Counted from the first letter of the stretch, positions 3,936 to 35,756 are shown. The stretch: 64,000 nt of DNA from Guillardia theta CCMP2712 (GCF_000315625.1 NW_005434664.1:186001-250000); one strand, 5' to 3'. Notes: generated from the sequence alone by a model not told the origin. Made by a program: numbers and translations.

Positions 3936-6808
3936 ATGAGTTCTAGCTCATTCCAAAACGTCGCTCGCACTGTAGGAGGGGAGCTGGCTAAGCAAGGCAT
4001 CCTCATGGCGAAAGAAGTTCCTGGCTCGGTTGCAGCAGCGATCGGCATCGCTGGGTTCATGAGCTGGTCGTACCTGGCCATGCGAGGAGCCAACCCGGCA
4101 TTGAAGAGGCAAAACAGACTCAGCTGGCTAGCCAAGAAGTCGATCACAGGAGGAAAAGCTCAGAGTGAAGATGCTTCGAATTCTGATGGGTATTTCAGCG
4201 AAGATGGATATGAAGTTGTTGAAAAAGAGCAGGCCAGCTGCGGTCATGAGAACGTTTCTGAAGATGAGGAAGAGGACGTGCAGTATCTTTGCGAGGAGGA
4301 AGTGGCTCAAAGAAATGTCGATGAAGTCTTCTCGGCTGTGATGAAACGTGATGTCAGCACGGTCAAGCGTGCAGTTGAGAAGAAGGTGGTGGACAGTACG
4401 ACATGCGATGCCTACGGGAACACGTTGCTTATCCTGGCGGCTCAAAGTGGAAGCGCGGAGATAGTGTCGTTTCTGATCGAGAAGTGAGTATATGTGACTT
4501 TAGCTCTGAGAGACGGTGTGTGCTGAATGCATGTTTGCTTATTGCAGCGGGTTCAACGTCAATGCTCAGAATTGGCGCGGGCAGACAGCTTTGCATTTTG
4601 CATACGCCTTCAGCTATCATCAACTTTGCGATCTCTTGCTCTCGAATGGGGCAAGGTATCATCCAATCACTGCTTCTACCTCACTCTCACACCTTGCCCG
4701 TCCTTCAGATCGGATATTCGCAACGACTACAATATGACAGCAGAAGAGGGCGCATTGTCCGGAATGAGCTTTCCGATGCCCATTGCTGATCTTGCTACCT
4801 CGCAGGTTTATTTCTGTTTGCTCTTTTGATAGTGTATTGTTTCTCTTGACCGTCATGGTCGTGCAGGAGTCTTCAGCTCCTCGAGCCAAGGAGGCCCCAG
4901 GTGAGAATTTCGAGTTGAAGCTGTGAGCTACCTGTTGATGTTTTTGCTTGCAGTGCAACGAGGAGCGGAGCCGAAGACTTTGCAGGCACCTCAGAAGAAG
5001 GAGCATGGCAATGCTGACATGTCCGTGATTGCACAGGATGCTGGAAACAATCACTTGAACAGCAAGAGGATGATGACATCCAACCTTCCTGAGAAGACAA
5101 CAGAATCGTACTTGGGAAGCAGCTCCCCTCGTGATGTTCCTCCGAATGGCCCCACGAACAGAGTCTCCTTTGAATCTCAGAAGTCAATGTCTTCGCTGCT
5201 CTCGTGGGGCCCCGAATTTGCATCCACGGCCTTCCCAAAGCAAGATCCTCAATTTGGAGGTCAAGCACGACGTTTGGACGCCCTTCTTCGGCCCTGACCC
5301 ATTTTTCCTGACAGGGAAGAAGGTCGCTGTGAAGGAAAAGAGCGCTCCTAGTGCGCAATGCTCGCCTCAAGGTAAAAACTCCGGTGAAGACGACAATGGC
5401 GAAGCCGTTGTGGGTAAGGCCCAGCATTGCTGTGCTGGAGTGAATCCTTACCGACTTTGATTCCAAGGTGACATCATCGTGGATGATGCGGATGTGGAAA
5501 CTTGTGAGAGCAAGGAAAGCAATATTGCTGCTCCTGCTCCTGCTCCTGCTCCTGGAGCACCTGGCATGTTTCCTCCCCCTCCTCCCCCTCCCCCCCCCCC
5601 TCCCCCACCTCGTCTGCCAGGAGGATCGAATGGAGCACCTGCTCCCCCTCCTCCTCCCCCTCCTCCTGGTATGAAGGCAGCTGCGGGTAGCAACGAGACG
5701 TCACAGCAGGGTGGAGTGCCAAAGATCTCCAAGTCTTGGGAAGTGATTCAACAGTTTCAAGCTCTCAACAGGTGATCCATGGCTTTTGCACGTTCTCGCA
5801 TGACTCGAGGCCTTGGAAGGAGAGCGGCTGCCTCTGGCGGTCATGCAGGACGAAAGGGGAATGGAGAGGAGGATGCGTCTAAGAATGGCAAGCCGCAAGC
5901 AGCCATTGCTGACGCAGTGAAGCAAGAGCTTGAGATGAAGTCAAGCTACATGCGGCAAGTGGTCGCAGATAGGGAGAAATATGCAGAAATGATCCTCGAT
6001 CTTGCCCGGCAAATCTCAAAGTTTGCACCGAAGAACATGGAGCAACTGGATGTCTTTGTCGCTGAAGTCGAAAGGCGTCTGGGGAAGCTGAGCGATGAAA
6101 GAATGGTACTCAAGGCTGAAAACTTCGCCAGCGTTTGGCCCGAGCGGAAGCTTGATGTGATGCGAGAGGCCATAGCAAAGAAGAATGAGTTTGAAACTCT
6201 TCTGAACAGCATGGATGTGACCAGTGAAAGGTGGGGAGCAAGAAGTAACGTTCGAGACGAGTTGGTTCATGTGATGGAGAAGTTCCAACAAGTGAAGCCG
6301 CAAGTTGACACGCATGTCCGCGAAAAAGACGATCTACAGGTCTCCTCCCCGTCTTGTCTCTTGCTTGCCTCCCGCGTAAGTTCTTCCGATCGGCTGATGT
6401 GTTTCCTAAACAGCGGAAATTCGCACACGACAAGATTCCCTTCGACTGGAACCTGCTGAAGAGGATTCAGCATGGTACAGTCGGTCTTGCCAACTACGCC
6501 ATGTCCATGGTGCTGTCTGCCTACCATCGCTTGCAAGACGAGGCGAATTCGAACGAAGTTCAGCATATGAGAGCCCTGATGGAGGAGGTCAGGCGTGTGA
6601 TGGAATTTGCCTGCTGTAACTATTCTGGTCCAGGCTCTGCGGTTCGCTTTCAAGTGCCATCAATTCGCCGGTGGTTTCGATCAGGTCAGTGGCCAACGAA
6701 GTCGGCGAGCTCATGCTGATGCGGCTGCTGCAGGAGACAACCTCTCTCTTCGTGGCATTGAACTCTGCTCTGCATCCGCAAGAGTCGTCAACGCCAGCTG
6801 AAAGTTGA
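3936..6808 (+). CDS. CHUP1-like protein: N-terminal TM anchor, ankyrin repeats, polyproline (FH1-like) tract and CHUP1/IPGA1-type C-terminal domain
   Basis: About 10 exons joined through GT-AG introns. Ankyrin motifs DAYGNTLLILAAQSG and NAQNWRGQTALHFA. PPPP tracts at 5570-5670. C-terminal LSDERMVLK..WPERKLDVMREA..IPFDW..ALRFAFKCHQFAGGFDQ matches the plant CHUP1 signature LVDERAVLK..WPEGKADALREA..IPVDW..VRFAFRVHQFAGGFD. Confidence 0.8.
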
Positions 6809-12991: not shown

Positions 12992-13259
12992 ATTCAGATC
13001 AGCCCTACAATCAGCTTTACCAGGCTCAAATCAGATCAGGATAAATTTAATCAAAGCGGCAGGGCATACAAACTGAACCTGTGCACGATACAACACAAAA
13101 ACGAATTGTCAACACACATACACACTGGTATGCTGTAAATGGTGCCGAAAAACAAGCTTGAAATTGCGAGAACCAGCCGATGATACAGCCTGAGGAAAAA
13201 ATTGAGAAACAAACAACATAAGGAAAAAAACATCACCTGGTTTAGCGCAAAACCATATT

Positions 13260-14357
13260 TCAAAAGTCCAAAAAGACATGACCCTCCCGCACCATCGTGC
13301 TCTGGACCGCTCCCTTGTCTACTCCTACACGGAGCATCTTGAAGTACTTGCTGTACCGCGGGTCGTCCTTGAGCTTCACCACGACTCCCGCGAAGGCTCC
13401 CATGTCCGTCGCAGACGAGGGGTCCCGCTCCAGGATGCTCGGGTCGTGGCCCTCCCGCACCATCGTGCTCTTGACCGCTCCCTTGTCTACTCCTACACGG
13501 AGCATCTTGAAGTACTTGCTGTACCGCGGGTCGTCCTTGAGCTTCACCACGACTCCCGCGAAGGCTCCCATGTCCGTCGCAGACGAGGGGTCCCGCTCCA
13601 GGATGCTCGGGTCGTGGCCCTCCCGCACCATCGTGCTCTTGACCGCTCCCTTGTCTACTCCTGCACGGAGCATCTTGAAGTACTTGCTGTACCGCGGGTC
13701 GTCCTTGAGCTTCACCACGACTCCCGCGAAGGCTCCCATGTCCGTCGCAGACGAGGGGTCCCGCTCGAGGATGCTCGGGTCGTGGCCCTCCCGCACCATC
13801 GTGCTCTTGACCGCTCCCTTGTCTACTCCTACACGGAGCATCTTGAAGTACTTGCTGTACCGCGGGTCGTCCTTGAGCTTCACCACGACTCCCGCGAAGG
13901 CTCCCATGTCCGTCGCAGACGAGGGGTCCCGCTCCAGGATGCTCGGGTCGTGGCCCTCCCGCACCATCGTGCTCTTGACCGCTCCCTTGTCTACTCCTAC
14001 ACGGAGCATCTTGAAGTACTTGCTGTACCGCGGGTCCTCTTGTAAGGACACGGTTGTTTCGGGGCCGTTGGCTTCTGGGTTCTTTTGTTTTCTTCCGACA
14101 AATGACATCGTTGTTTTGACGTCATTTTCTTTGTTTTTTGTTTGTGTTTCTTCTGTTTTTTCTGCTGTTGTTGTTGTTGTCTGTTTTTGTGGTGGTGGTG
14201 GTGGTGGTGGGTATTGCGGAGGCGAGGAGAGCATTTCTTTCTTCACCGTGGATACCTGCATGGCTTTTGGCTCGGACATTCCCGGATAAAATGAACCAGG
14301 TGGACTACCGGTGCTATATCCTTTATCCTTGTGGATATTTCCTAGGTGGGTGTGCAC
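13260..14357 (-). CDS. Intronless ORF with a polyproline tract and ~4.6 tandem 56-aa repeats carrying the CCDC53/WASHC3 C-terminal motif; may be a gene fragment
   Basis: LKDDPRYSKYFKMLRVGVDKGAVKSTMVREGHDPSILE resembles the WASHC3 C-terminal motif (KDPRY..Y.KM..VGVP..AI..KM..EG.DP..LE). The last repeat is truncated (REGHVFLDF*). Confidence 0.6.
   Translation of the reverse strand: MHTHLGNIHKDKGYSTGSPPGSFYPGMSEPKAMQVSTVKKEMLSSPPQYPPPPPPPQKQTTTTTAEKTEETQTKNKENDVKTTMSFVGRKQKNPEANGPETTVSLQEDPRYSKYFKMLRVGVDKGAVKSTMVREGHDPSILERDPSSATDMGAFAGVVVKLKDDPRYSKYFKMLRVGVDKGAVKSTMVREGHDPSILERDPSSATDMGAFAGVVVKLKDDPRYSKYFKMLRAGVDKGAVKSTMVREGHDPSILERDPSSATDMGAFAGVVVKLKDDPRYSKYFKMLRVGVDKGAVKSTMVREGHDPSILERDPSSATDMGAFAGVVVKLKDDPRYSKYFKMLRVGVDKGAVQSTMVREGHVFLDF
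13280..14037. repeat. 168-bp near-identical tandem array, ~4.5 copies
   Basis: ccctcccgcaccatcgtgctc recurs at 13282, 13450, 13618, 13786 and 13954. Confidence 0.97.
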
Positions 14358-14465
14358 TGATTCCCTAACTTGACCGGTGCATTTCCCAGATTTTACGGGG
14401 GTAGGGTAGAACGCGGCAGCTACAGCTGTTGGGAATTTGAAAATGATTCATGGTGTTTTGAGTAG

Positions 14466-14473
14466 TATATATA
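14466..14473 (+). promoter_or_regulatory. TATA box of candidate small RNA gene copy 1
   Basis: TATATATA starts 30 nt before the conserved AACTCGGC; the spacing is the same in copy 2. Confidence 0.55.
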
Positions 14474-14495
14474 CTTTGGCATTGATCGCTTTAGT

Positions 14496-14539
14496 AACTC
14501 GGCGGCTGGTCAAGGTGTATATCACCCCTACCTTTTTGA
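14496..14539 (+). ncRNA. Candidate spliced-leader (SL) RNA gene, copy 1
   Basis: AACTCGGCGGCTGGTCAAG|GTGTATATCACCCCTACCTTTTTGA is identical to the copy at 35630-35673 (-) although the flanks are unrelated. It has a donor-like AAG|GT, a GGTG-TATAT-CACC hairpin, a U5 Sm-like site and TATA at -30. Confidence 0.6.
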
Positions 14540-14712
14540 CAGTTGCATTGTTTTTGGGAATCATAGTGCTGAATTGCGCGGGATCGATTACCACTCTGTA
14601 CACAACAGAAGAATTCTCAAATCACTTGACAGTGACCTGAACTGACTACCGTTGACCGGCGTACAGTGTGACTTGCCAGTACGGAAGTGACTTAAGTTAG
14701 TCGACGCCTTTT

Positions 14713-15443
14713 TGTCACAGTGCTCGCTACCGTCAGTCATTCGGTTCCATCGAGTGTGGAGAGCGATCACGGTGGTCAGCGATGGGATCCTGAGTCTCGG
14801 ATCTCCACGGCCCATTTTCCCTGTACTACCAGGCTGCGGTATCGGAGCTCCAAACTTGAAGACAGAGGCTCAGTCAGATCATGCTTGCCGTCACTCCTTT
14901 TCAATTTCTTCTACAACGGTAGTTACTGGCGGCTCCTTCAGTCTGTTAGGGTTCGAGCCTCGCGTGGCAGGCCCATCTAGCCTGCTAAGTTGAAGCGGCT
15001 CACTGACGGCGGAAGACGCTTCCGCCGGGGAGCTCTTGCCACGGTTGTCGGACGTCGACTTGCTGGGTCGACGGCCGGGCTGAGTGTATGCGGCAACAGC
15101 AGGATGCGGGGATGATGGAGATGAAGTCAAGGCATCTCACTGAGCTGTCAGTGACAGCATGTAGGTCAAGCTCGTCTCCACCGTCCCTCGAGAACAGCCA
15201 TCATTCGGATACATTCAGGTACGTTGCCGCACTTGAAGTGTATGAGGACTTCACCTAGGTGACCTCATCCTCGCCCGTCAGGTCACTGAGCTGCTTCTGC
15301 AATTCGACTCTCGTCCTGACTCCCCGGCCGTCACGCCAAGAGATGCCCCGTGGCTGCTCGGTCTCGGAGCGAGTCAACGGACGACCGGCACTGTCTGTTT
15401 GCTGGTGTTCTCTTGTATGGTTAATGACAGTAAAGTTGTGACA
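14713..15443 (-). mobile_element. Possible degenerate retroelement/LTR relic
   Basis: Bounded by inverted TGTCACA...TGTGACA and contains stop-interrupted intronless reading frames. No target-site duplication seen. Confidence 0.25.
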
Positions 15444-15694
15444 ACGTGACCCGCTGTCTTGATTTGGTTGTTCTAGAGGAAATGTTCCCTTGTCGATCAG
15501 ATTTCCCCATAGATACCTGTGATGGGTCAGAAAGTTGTGAGGACATAGCGAGGAAGAGTCGAGGGAAAGCGGCGGTCGAGATTGAGAATTAGATATGAGA
15601 ATGATTGTATGCAGTAGCAAGAACAAAACGAGGATGAGAAGGAGATTGCGAGGGAACATATTGTGTGGGTGGTGGACGATGATGAAGATGGTGA

Positions 15695-15729
<35 letters not shown>
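15695..15729. repeat. (GAT)n microsatellite
   Basis: Direct observation. Confidence 0.95.
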
Positions 15730-15730
<1 letters not shown>

Positions 15731-16104
15731 GTGAGGAGGAGGCAAGAAGTGTGTCGGATAGGAGGGGCTGGAGGGTTATGGGATGTAAAGGAGGGTTCAG
15801 ACAAGTAGCACGAGCAAACGACAAGATTTCATTGACCTGGGCAAGTAAAGTAAGTCACAAGAAAGTTAGAGGCTGGTCAAGGGATTATTTGATCCCTCCT
15901 CCCTCCCTCCAGCTCCATTCTCTATCAATCAGCGACCAAGACGAGGACACGAGCAGGAGGAGGGGCTTCAGCCCCAGTATAGCCTAACGAGTGCAAGCTA
16001 CAAAGCCCGCACCCGACGACATTCTGACGCCGTAAGGAGCAGGAGCACGAGATCGGGAGGAGCAGGAGGAGCAGGAGGAGCAGGAGACTGGGAGGCCAGT
16101 GGAA

Positions 16105-19100
16105 TCATCGAGCCTTGAGCAGCTTCACGATCTTCTCTTGCATGATGCGCCTCGCCGGGAAGTAGGAGGACAGACAAGCTGAGCCAACAGCTCCGAGGAG
16201 GATGACGACGATGATCTCTGGAGGCAGCTTGAGGAGGAGCGGCAGCTGCGTGAACATGGTTTGCTGTGCTGTGACCTGCGAGACAAACTTCGTCAGAATG
16301 ATCCTCTCCTCGTGCTTCAGATTCACCGTAGAGGCCACAATGGCGCCGATGCCCAATCCAAGGAGGGCAGAGCTCAGGACAAGGACAGTCGCCTCCATGG
16401 TGTAGAGCCTTGCGATCCAGTTGCGCGTCACCCCGATGGCTCGCAGCAACCCGAGCTCCTTGGCTTGCTCCTGAATGTTGGCGAACATGGAGGAGACGAG
16501 AGAGAAGAAGGAAACGATGAGCGCCACGCCCGTTGTCAACGACGAAAAGATGCCCATGGCGTCTGACGCGATCTGGAAGCCTCGGTACCTGTTCCTGACG
16601 TCTCGCGGGCGGCAGCCGATGTCGCTAGCGAGGTTTGACATCTGATCGCTGATCTCGTCCACCTCCTCCTGCGACAGCCCGTCCTTGAGCTTGAAGAGAG
16701 TGAAGTAGAGCGGGATGTCCCGCACCGAGTAGCCATCCTTGAGATGCCTTACGAGCCTTGCAAACGTCGGGAACGAGACGATGGCGTCCTGGAACTGCCT
16801 CGCCGGGTACCTTGACATCGTCAGCTTCGGGACTCCATCGAGGAAGGCCATGGGACGAAGCCTCTCGTACATGGCTGGCTCCCCTTGCAGCTGCAGCAGG
16901 AAGGAGGAATTCAGCGTCATTGCCATCTTGTCCATGTACAGGGACCCGATGAGCATCGACTGAGAGCCCATGGCACTGTAAATGCTCTCAGTGAGCTGGT
17001 CGAAGTAGCTGGGCAGCTGGTCTCGGATCGTCAGGAACCCTTCGCTCGCCACCTTGAAGAAGTTTGGGGTGACGGCGTAGACATCGTTCCCAGCTGAGAC
17101 GACCCTCCCGAGAGTTCGGATGCTGTTGCTCTGCGATGTGACAGAGCGAAAAGAATGCGAGACGAGCGCAAAGTCTTCCACCAGCCGGTTCTCCTGTACA
17201 AATTCTTCTATCTGTCGCGCTGCCCACGCGGCCTTGACCAAAGTCGGGCAGTACATGGCAAGCACGCTCCCGTTCTTCCTCAGCTGGTTCAGTTTGAACT
17301 GTTCAATCTGCATGGATAGCAAGACGATGACAAAGACGACGAAGGCCAAGGACAGGGAGTACATGAGTGTTGTCTTGCGGTTTCTGGTCCTGTGGGCTAT
17401 CAGATTCTTGTGCAGGGTGGTTCGCATTGAACTTTCCGACCACCAGAAGAAAATGTTTGTGATGACGTACTCCACAGGCCTCTCTATGTTCATAGACAGC
17501 AGCACCAAACCAGCAAGGATGCCCATGAGCAGAGCAAAGAAGATGTAGAGGAGGAGAGTCAGGTTGAAGGTGAGCAGAGCAAGAGGAAACATGTAGTACA
17601 CAAGCACGCCGAACATCGTCATCAGGCTGCCGATGACAATCAGCGGTGTCGGGATAATCTTCTGACTCGCGCGCTCCAGCGAAACCTTGACGGCCACGAC
17701 CTTGTTCCTCCGGATGTCAAGGGCGTCAGTAAGAGATACCGAGAGGGCTTTGCGGATGGGAAGGATGACGGCAACGGCAGGGACCAGCAGCCCGATCACT
17801 GTCGCGTACTGGATGGAGAACGTCTCGACCTGTGGGATTGTCTTCCACTCGAAGATCGACTTGAGCAGGTCCAGCACAGCTGCTACCAGGAACTTGGACA
17901 CCAGCAGGCCGATGGCCCAGCCAGGAATGCTCGTCAAGAAGGTCTGGAGGAGGAGAAGTCGAATAACTCCCCGGCGGGTCATGCCGACCATTCGCAGGAC
18001 CCCGAGATCGAAAGCTCTGTTCTCCACTGAGATGATGAGCAGCGAGTACATGAGAAGGCACAGCAGAAACACAAGTGCCACGATGATGATGCTGATGATC
18101 AGACCAAGAAAGATAGAAACCGTCCTGAGCACCCTCAATTCTCCCAACAACATGATCGATGCATCGATGTACTCGAAGCCTATTTTGGTGACCAGTCTCG
18201 ACATCATGTGCAGCACTTTGGTCTGCACGACAGAGTAGTCGTTCTTCATGTAGAACACGCTTCGAGGAGGCGGGAGGTTGTAGCAAACATATTGAGCGTA
18301 TTCATACAAGTCAATGCTCGAGAAAGAGTCTTGCAGATAGTTGGCATTGGGGTTGAGATTCTTTGACACAGCTTCGATGAACGTGCCGTACTCCATCACA
18401 ACAGCATTCGTCGCCTCCTCATTGAACTTCCCTCCCGTCTGCTCAAAAATGGAGCTCACCCGAACAGGGAGCAAGATCGTAGTCGAAGATCGGAACTGTT
18501 CAGAGTCCTGGAGGCCCAGTGGAGCTGTTAAACTTCGTGGCAGAGCAATACTGAAGAGATCGCTCAGCGAGAACTGAAGGATCAACTCACTCCCGACTGT
18601 AGCATTCAGCATCGTTGCAAGGTCTTTGTGCAGATATACACTTCCCGGAGGGGCTGCTTCCAGGTGCCAGTGCGATCCAAGACCCATCCTCTCCTCCAGG
18701 TAGGAGTCTATGAGGTACAAATCTGCACTGTCCGGAGCTCCGCACTGCTCTGTTGCGAGTGAGTCAGTAAAGAGCAAGAGAGAGAGAGAAGAGGGAGGGA
18801 GGGAGGGAGGGAGGGAGGGAGGGAGGGAGGGAGGGAGGGAGGGAGGGAGGGAGGGATAGCACGGGCAAGAGAAATGAGAAGGGAAAAGTCGAGGGGAAGG
18901 ATGAAGGTGAGGGTGAAAGTGAGGGCGAGGGCGAGGGCGAGGGCGAGAGCCAACATCAGTACATTGTCACTGCTATCATCACTGCCCTTACCTGCAACAC
19001 ATGACGACGTTGAAGATTCAGCATGCAGTCCACAACTCGATCCGTCCTTGCCAAGATATCGATCGCTTGCGTCCCGGAAGTTCCAACCTTGGTTGTTGCA

Positions 19101-35118: not shown

Positions 35119-35629
35119 TGCTGGTGAAGATGACTGGGGAGGATGTCACGCTACCGGCTGCGCAGGAAGCTTGAGAGCAGTCTCAGACATCACCGTCGAA
35201 GCCTTACACCAGTCGTACCCCACTGACACAAGTCTGTTCTAGGTTGACCACTTACAAGTTTGGCTGCCTGCCTTCATCCTGCATGGGTGGGAGGGGGGAG
35301 ACACTTGCGTGAGCTTCTTGTTCACGTCCCCGATACTCTCGCGATCCTCCCCGCACTTCCACATTTTTCTCTATTTGTATGATACGAAGGCTCTGCTGAC
35401 TTACTAGATCTTGAGCTGCATGGCCGAGGCGAGCTCACATATATACGCACACTGGCAAGCTTCACTCAAAGTTAAGTTAAAAATCAGTCGGACCGGGGAC
35501 TGAAACATGCCGGGCCCGGTGACTCTACTAGCGGATGGCATGATTGCCGGAAACCATAAAAAGAGTAGGGAAGCGGCAGCAAGTGGAATCGAACTCGCGT
35601 GAGCAGACCTTTCACGAGATTCCGATAAC

Positions 35630-35673
35630 TCAAAAAGGTAGGGGTGATATACACCTTGACCAGCCGCCGAGTT
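35630..35673 (-). ncRNA. Candidate spliced-leader (SL) RNA gene, copy 2
   Basis: Identical to 14496-14539, with TATATATA at 35703-35696, 30 nt upstream. Confidence 0.6.
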
Positions 35674-35756
35674 AACAAGTATCACAAAAATGAAATATAT
35701 ATACACCTCCTCCCCAGTCCTCGTATTGAGAGCGCTTGGTTTAGTGCAGTAGCTCC

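Follow-up and report, generated by a model that had tools for sequence, protein, structure and literature searches.

The window analysed here, a stretch of 64,000 nt of Guillardia theta DNA (G000:C10:186001-250000), includes two identical copies of a 45-nt sequence which are almost certainly functional members of the published G. theta spliced leader (SL) RNA gene family, with a start probably set by a TATA box and a leader which is donated to mRNAs. There is no counter-evidence to their identity as SL RNA genes. A preliminary description, made from the raw sequence, had presented the first copy as a novel candidate SL gene: it recovered a real small RNA gene and its assignment was right, although the family had already been described (Roy 2017; PMC5619915). 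An SL RNA gene in a cryptomonad, published in 2017, is nothing new in itself and the points which go beyond that publication are modest additions: the TATA-only upstream anatomy, a B-box-like downstream block, a probable 19-nt leader and an antisense-bearing paralogue.

Identity of the conserved 45-mer

The 45-mer lies at 14495-14539 (+) and 35630-35674 (-) with 0 mismatches at either site, as had been claimed, and has 0 matches in 100 dinucleotide-preserving shuffles of the window. The features of the two genes, counted from the first letter of the window, are:

14418-14426 (+): AGCTACAGC, upstream box of the preliminary description, copy 1, 48 nt before the TATA box; not a conserved element
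14465-14474 (+): TATA box GTATATATAC, copy 1, first T 30 nt before the predicted start
14495-14497 (+): invariant TAA, predicted initiator T/A (11/11 independent copies, 20/20 overall)
14496-14514 (+): SL exon, copy 1, probably 19 nt, corresponding to the leader of Roy 2017 (17 nt, 14498-14514)
14514-14526 (+): possible 4-bp hairpin, copy 1; not significant
14515-14539 (+): intron part of the SL RNA, copy 1, with GT at 14515-14516 and a U5 run at 14533-14537, then GA
14551-14555 (+): second T5 run, possible back-up terminator (second runs are enriched in the spacers)
14569-14591 (+): downstream block, copy 1, ending GGATCGATTAC; weakest instance of the family
35585-35607 (-): downstream block, copy 2, ending AGTTCGATTCC; matrix score 13.3, top 0.3% of controls
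35630-35654 (-): intron part, copy 2, with GT donor and U5-GA, as conserved in the family
35655-35673 (-): SL exon, copy 2, 19 nt (published 17 nt at 35671-35655)
35695-35704 (-): TATA box, copy 2, at the same fixed position in the family
35746-35754 (-): AGCTACTGC, upstream box of the preliminary description, copy 2, 51 nt before the TATA box; not a conserved element

Roy 2017 (Genome Biol Evol 9:468; PMC5619915) described a leader, CTCGGCGGCTGGTCAAG, at the 5′ end of many G. theta and Hanusia phi transcripts, with 868,236 reads carrying it, 7,101 AG acceptor sites and approximately 21% of genes trans-spliced. There are 20 leader copies in the genome, each directly followed by GT, and similarity reaches 23 nt past the splice site into the intron part, which terminates in a U-rich Sm-like motif with purines on its flanks (PMC5619915). 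The leader was given a length of 17 nt and similarity was said to begin abruptly at the leader; the text mentions no TATA, promoter, hairpin or secondary structure (PMC5619915).

This published 17-mer occurs exactly at window positions 14498-14514 and 35671-35655. The GT donor follows at 14515-14516 in copy 1 and at 35654-35653 in copy 2, as it does in 20/20 copies. The core thus holds the exact published leader, then GT and the conserved intron part of the same paper, which bears out its earlier reading as an SL RNA gene. That paper is also a report of SL trans-splicing in both G. theta and H. phi, which had been cited in support of that reading (PMC5619915).

Among the papers covered by a full-text search, none other than Roy 2017 contains the leader sequence. 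Rfam includes no family matching the SL gene or the SL clusters, and ARAGORN detects no tRNA in the window or at the SL loci. Metagenome contigs provide 11 exact matches to the leader followed by GT; these contigs are GC-rich and bacterial-looking, carry neither TATA box nor intron part, and the matches are due to chance.

In the best-supported reading, a TATA box about 30 nt upstream directs initiation to the A of T|AACTC. The resulting SL RNA is composed of a leader ending in CAAG, a GU donor and some 25 more conserved bases ending in U5-6 and a purine, and the spliceosome transfers the leader to AG acceptors located just upstream of the start codons of about one fifth of nuclear mRNAs.

Copy number, clusters and independent flank classes

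A pattern search of the complete 87.1-Mb, 669-contig assembly retrieves 20 copies with at most 3 mismatches, and 0 with a reversed control pattern. This is also the number reported by Roy 2017 (PMC5619915). The SL exon shows no variation across the 20/20 copies. Copies with related flanks were collapsed into 11 independent flank classes, which were used for all conservation counts, and positions within the family alignment are anchored on the C of CTCGG as +1.

Three copies on contig C429 (G000:C429:5351-7010) have flanks 100% identical, in reverse orientation, to those of three copies on C48 (G000:C48:436700-438360), which is probably an assembly redundancy. Since the C429 copies are probably assembly duplicates, the true copy number may be 17 instead of 20. 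Two further copies, on C210, have identical flanks.

Clustering is common in the family: 16/20 copies are found in clusters, some spaced by 350-900 bp, and Roy 2017 similarly described 16/20 copies in clusters of 2-5, spanning 1-21 kb and on either strand (PMC5619915). With 21.2 kb between them and opposite orientations, the two window copies fit the 21-kb (largest) cluster of that paper. The earlier description of the gene as solitary and non-tandem is thus appropriate for this pair, 21 kb apart, but not for the family.

We also observed a 21st, promoter-less SL fragment, G000:C19:800672-800709 (-), which matches only from -1 (ACTCGG) to +37 (AACCTT) and is devoid of a TATA box, a full T-run and the downstream block. 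Either this copy has decayed or it arose by retro-copying of an SL RNA, in which case its ends would indicate those of the RNA. In addition, among the contigs of runs X1/X2 which align at 14493-14540 of the window, some, including one of 1,636 nt (depth 52), pass unspliced through a C48-type SL gene and continue for about 1.6 kb past its T-run and downstream block, suggestive of overlapping transcription or read-through in the C48 cluster.

TATA box, start site and leader length

The motif TATATATA starts at 14466 (+) and 35703 (-), so that in both copies the distance to the first A of AACTC is 30 nt, precisely as the preliminary description had it. The family as a whole reads G-T-n-T-A-T-A-T-A from -33 to -25, with a free spacer between these positions and the core. 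The copies returned by the genome-wide search also have the TATA box in place: TATAWA starts at -32..-29 in 10/11 independent copies, compared to a background frequency of 0.0009 (P ~4e-30).

Run X1, an RNA run (exon-only coverage and a spliced 51-nt intron), includes four contigs with pieces of 20-21 letters which all begin exactly at 14496 and are then joined to other sequence. The far side of these joints is a (GGAGCA)n repeat at 16056-16086 and is uninformative on the acceptor. This repeat, inside or beside the 3′ end of a minus-strand gene, behaves as a mapping hub: its depth is very high and it attracts numerous false joints, those of the leader-bearing contigs included. No trans-splice acceptor was seen among the listed loose ends of the window region 13100-19000. 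The raw-read run X17 is a 3′-tag-like library with about 1 read on the SL gene and no read starts or ends listed.

The 19-nt exon proposed initially, rather than the published 17 nt, is favoured because the TAA is invariant and because the X1 contig pieces begin at 14496. Together with the TATA spacing, these observations indicate that the leader is probably 19 nt in length and that transcription probably starts at the A at 14496.

The other upstream element proposed as a promoter box, AGCTACWGC, was located correctly at 48 and 51 nt before the TATA box of the two copies but is at chance level: no local alignment between the flanks of the window pair scores higher, yet 78% of shuffles score at least as well. 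It occurs exactly in 3/11 independent copies, at varying distances (-80, -83 and -144), is missing from the other 8/11, and was rejected as a promoter box. Local alignment of the two far-upstream window flanks scores 13, with a shuffle mean of 14.3. The view that the flanks are unrelated except for these two elements is therefore correct upstream, at shuffle level, but overlooked a conserved block downstream.

The intron part and its U-run

The core is invariant from T-3 A-2 A-1 to +40 and is followed by G at +41 (8/11) and A at +42 (10/11), with no positional conservation immediately beyond. A T5-6 run occupies +36..+41, at the end of conservation, and U5-6 followed by a purine is found in 11/11 independent copies, consistent with the candidate U5-GA Sm-like site suggested earlier. 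The 5′ neighbour of the SL U-run is CC, where the Sm sites of the U4/U5 genes of this genome, which read AAUUUUUGA, have AA. The U-run may bind Sm proteins and/or end transcription, which would result in an RNA of only ~40-45 nt.

The proposed hairpin, GGUG-UAUAU-CACC, is possible and did not stand up to scrutiny: the 44-nt RNA, with a folding energy of -7.6 kcal/mol, folds no better than shuffled sequence (z = +0.63), and significant RNA structure in the 44-nt core was rejected on this basis. The intron shows only two variants, a change of CACC to CAUC, which retains a G-U pair, and one loop change; these are too few for covariation.

A conserved block downstream of the SL genes

The sequence GWTCGAWTCC is present in the downstream flank of 11/11 independent copies. 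A B-box position weight matrix (PWM), constructed from 31 native tRNA B boxes and calibrated on 5,000 control segments, has its best match at +75..+90 in 11/11 independent copies and on the sense strand only. All 11 score within the top 4.3% of controls and five within the top 0.3%, while scores in the upstream flanks of these copies do not exceed background. Conservation continues for 13 nt farther 5′ to give C.TAA.CTCs.C.GWTCGATTCC, a block of about 23 nt in all, whose invariant positions (anchored on the box) are C(-5), G(0), T(2), C(3) and A(5). The gene as first delimited ended at 14546, short of the block of copy 1 (14569-14591).

Between the T-run and the B-box-like element is a spacer of 34-48 nt whose sequence is not conserved. 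It includes a second run of at least 4 T in 5/11 independent copies, compared to a background of 0.074 (P = 7e-4).

The exact box has 12 matches genome-wide, which comprise seven SL copies, two copies of a paralogue (X, see below) and three sites without the TATA/T-run signature. That signature accompanies 0/18 of the matches with one mismatch. A composite search for ACCTTTTT followed by a gap of 22-52 nt and GWTCGAWYC gave 20 matches, compared to 3 for the control, and these are 16 SL genes, the two copies of X and two chance matches. Genome-wide, no member of the TATA / T-run / box class was found beyond the SL genes and X. The downstream block is a putative gene-external control element.

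Comparison with the snRNA and tRNA genes of G. theta

Rfam-guided searches of the same genome identified one U6 gene, three U2 genes and a fragment, three U1, two U4 and three U5 genes. All the U1, U2, U4, U5 and U6 genes carry CCCGCCATCGRGGGCAG, an element located some 50-70 nt upstream of the RNA. Those for U1, U2, U4 and U5 also include a 3′ box, CAAACAAA..AAG, which follows the end of the RNA by no more than about 10 nt. The U6 gene has, in addition to the upstream element, a TATA-like box at about -30 and a terminal T-run. The U2 5′ fragment (ATACCTTCTCGGCCTTTTGGCTAAG...) is embedded in the telomere-type (CCCTAAA)n array with which contig C61 starts (G000:C61:1420-1502).

Neither signal is found at the SL genes. 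The best match to CCCGCCATCGRGGGCAG within 400 nt upstream of the SL copies has 5-7 mismatches in 17, the same as in shuffles, and the CAAACAAA..AAG box is absent downstream of 11/11 SL representatives. An snRNA-type promoter or 3′ box at these genes was rejected.

Among the native tRNA genes (39 genes with 36 distinct flanks), a strict TATA motif is located 30-34 nt upstream of the mature 5′ end in 15/36 distinct flanks, and 38/39 genes have a terminal run of at least 4 T, mostly T5 (T4-7). The same upstream TATA arrangement is found at tRNA genes of fission yeast and plants. In its upstream TATA box and its T-run, the SL gene resembles the G. theta tRNA genes and not the snRNA genes. The resemblance does not extend to an A box or a tRNA 5′ half: in comparisons with 23 distinct native tRNA genes, the best local score is 8.0, which is also the mean for shuffles. 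The possibility that the leader is a tRNA-derived exon (class II tRNA D-arm) was rejected on the same score.

Transcription by Pol II or Pol III

The SL genes do not use the snRNA-type Pol II promoter of this genome. We retain Pol II as a working assumption because the leader must bring a cap to the mRNA, and we consider it probable that this polymerase transcribes the SL genes. The less likely reading, to be taken seriously as a minority view, is that the SL RNA is made by Pol III in the manner of yeast U6 (SNR6): TFIIIB would be placed by the TATA box at -30, termination within the T5-6 run would leave a U-tailed RNA of ~40 nt, and TFIIIC would bind the downstream GWTCGATTCC as an extragenic B box.

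The SL anatomy is no less compatible with Pol III than with Pol II. The TATA box occupies the same position as at native tRNA genes, and the T5-6 run is located exactly where SL conservation stops, just as native tRNA genes end at T-runs. The 11/11 sense-strand matches to the native B-box PWM at +75..+90, the enrichment of a second T-run in the spacer (P = 7e-4) and the lack of both CCCGCCATCGRGGGCAG and the CAAACAAA..AAG 3′ box point in the same direction, as does the promoter-less C19 fragment, which ends within the T-run, at +37. SNR6 itself provides a precedent for a TATA box combined with a B box downstream of the terminator (PMC9136082).

Other aspects of the anatomy argue against Pol III. 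There is no significant A box or tRNA 5′-half similarity. With respect to the B-box reference, GGTTCGANTCC, position 54 is A or G in 5/11 SL copies, and the box sits within a longer block, extended by 13 nt, which is specific to the SL genes and found nowhere else; this points to a dedicated factor in place of TFIIIC. Conservation continues past the U-run into the next two bases, G (8/11) and A (10/11), as expected if they were inside the RNA as part of an Sm site. The RNA-run contigs which pass unspliced through a C48-type copy and for 1.6 kb beyond are a weak point in this respect, as graph-based contigs show no transcript ends. Pol III transcripts carry no m7G cap and, under Pol III, ~20% of mRNAs would be without a normal cap. 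To our knowledge, no SL RNA is made by Pol III. The T. brucei SL RNA is a Pol II product and is capped (PMC2943599).

Whichever polymerase is involved, the SL genes bypass the promoter and 3′-end signals common to the snRNA genes of this genome, and their TATA box, T-run and B-box-like block are parts of the Pol III type. SL trans-splicing arose many times, and a Pol III-like chassis or a dedicated downstream factor, if true, would provide a concrete and testable clue to the origin of one SL RNA gene. A Pol III SL RNA would be the first, as far as we know, and would raise the question of the source of the leader cap and of how about one fifth of mRNAs obtain it.

Genomic context

The SL copies are located in ordinary intergenic DNA and their flanks are host genes or have no Pfam match. 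Copy 1 is head-to-head with a gene for the WASH-complex protein CCDC53 (13260-14357 (-); Pfam PF10152, E = 1e-70), whose start codon is ~110 nt from the copy 1 TATA box. Copy 2 adjoins a cytochrome b561 gene and other copies adjoin PMSR and membrane-transporter genes. No 5S rRNA or other Rfam RNA was found beside the SL copies.

An origin of the 45-mer as a mobile-element terminus or target (e.g. of a CRE/SLACS-like retroelement) or as a neutral recent duplication is excluded for practical purposes and we regard it as extremely improbable. Recent duplicates do exist (C429 is identical to a stretch of C48, and the two C210 copies to each other), but the 11 flank classes are mutually unalignable and nevertheless have the core, the TATA box and the downstream block in constrained places throughout, which agrees with the initial preference for a gene under selection. 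The neighbours are host genes, a search of the 1.5 kb around the copies tested revealed no ORF for a reverse transcriptase or an endonuclease, and thousands of mRNAs carry the exon (Roy 2017; PMC5619915).

An antisense-bearing paralogue

Paralogue X, on contig C303, is present as two identical inverted copies about 3.5 kb apart, at G000:C303:8791-8950 (+) and around 5181-5340 (-). They are part of a larger segmental duplication and are the only two in existence. X is composed of GGTATATATGC, followed about 30 nt on by a ~96-nt sequence ending in GTACCTTTTTG, a 17-nt spacer and CTCCCCAGATCGATTCC. It shares with the SL genes the TATA box, the tail (ACCUUUUUG / ACCTTTTTG) and the downstream block; there is no Rfam match at this locus. 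X is probably a rearranged SL-gene paralogue since the surroundings of its TATA box are similar to those in SL genes of the C210 type, and it provides no independent evidence for a wider gene class.

The interior of X includes an antisense image of the leader, CGCCTTGACCA-AC-TCCGACGAG. A perfect 9-nt core, complementary to UGGUCAAG|G, spans the 5′ splice site of the SL RNA, a length reached in 0.7% of shuffles, and the energy of the X:leader duplex is -31.9 kcal/mol, compared to -23.9 +/- 3.5 for shuffles, 2.5% of which do as well. The antisense image may have been left behind when inverted SL copies recombined. A weaker idea is that X could specify a partner RNA which pairs with the SL RNA across its 5′ splice site.

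Relationship to known systems

The genes described here are the same as those of Roy 2017, with the same leader, donor, 23-nt intron part, Sm-like site, 20 copies and clusters of 1-21 kb on both strands (PMC5619915). To that description can be added the invariant TAA, the TATA box at a fixed position, the downstream block and a leader which is probably 19 nt in length.

In the order of their parts, SNR6 and the SL gene are alike: a TATA box at -30, a short RNA, a T-run and a downstream B-box or B-box-like element (PMC9136082). They differ in that SNR6 has an internal A box, with box B about 200 bp from box A, whereas the SL gene has no detectable A box and its box is 34-48 nt after the T-run. 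The U6 gene of G. theta itself has the snRNA upstream element and a TATA-like box but is without such a downstream block.

Like those of G. theta, the SL genes of trypanosomatids and nematodes are multi-copy and specify a donor RNA with a leader, a GU donor and an Sm or Sm-like site; the G. theta RNA would be capped, as theirs is. Transcription of kinetoplastid SL RNA reportedly ends at a T tract. The trypanosomatid and nematode SL RNAs are ~100-140 nt in length with three stem-loops and leaders of 22-39 nt, whereas the conserved unit of G. theta is ~44 nt. Nematode SL genes have an snRNA-type proximal element and, in contrast, the G. theta SL genes are without an element of this type.

The dinoflagellate leader, DinoSL, was cited in the preliminary description as ending in TCAAG|GT and does end in UCAAG (DCCGUAGCCAUUUUGGCUCAAG; PMC2606063). 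These five shared bases are no evidence of homology. In dinoflagellates the Sm-like site is said to be inside the exon and the genes are reportedly often in tandem arrays, some with 5S rDNA. The DinoSL leader, of 22 nt, is otherwise unrelated in sequence to that of G. theta; both systems are based on a very short protist SL RNA with a leader ending in UCAAG before the GU (PMC2606063).
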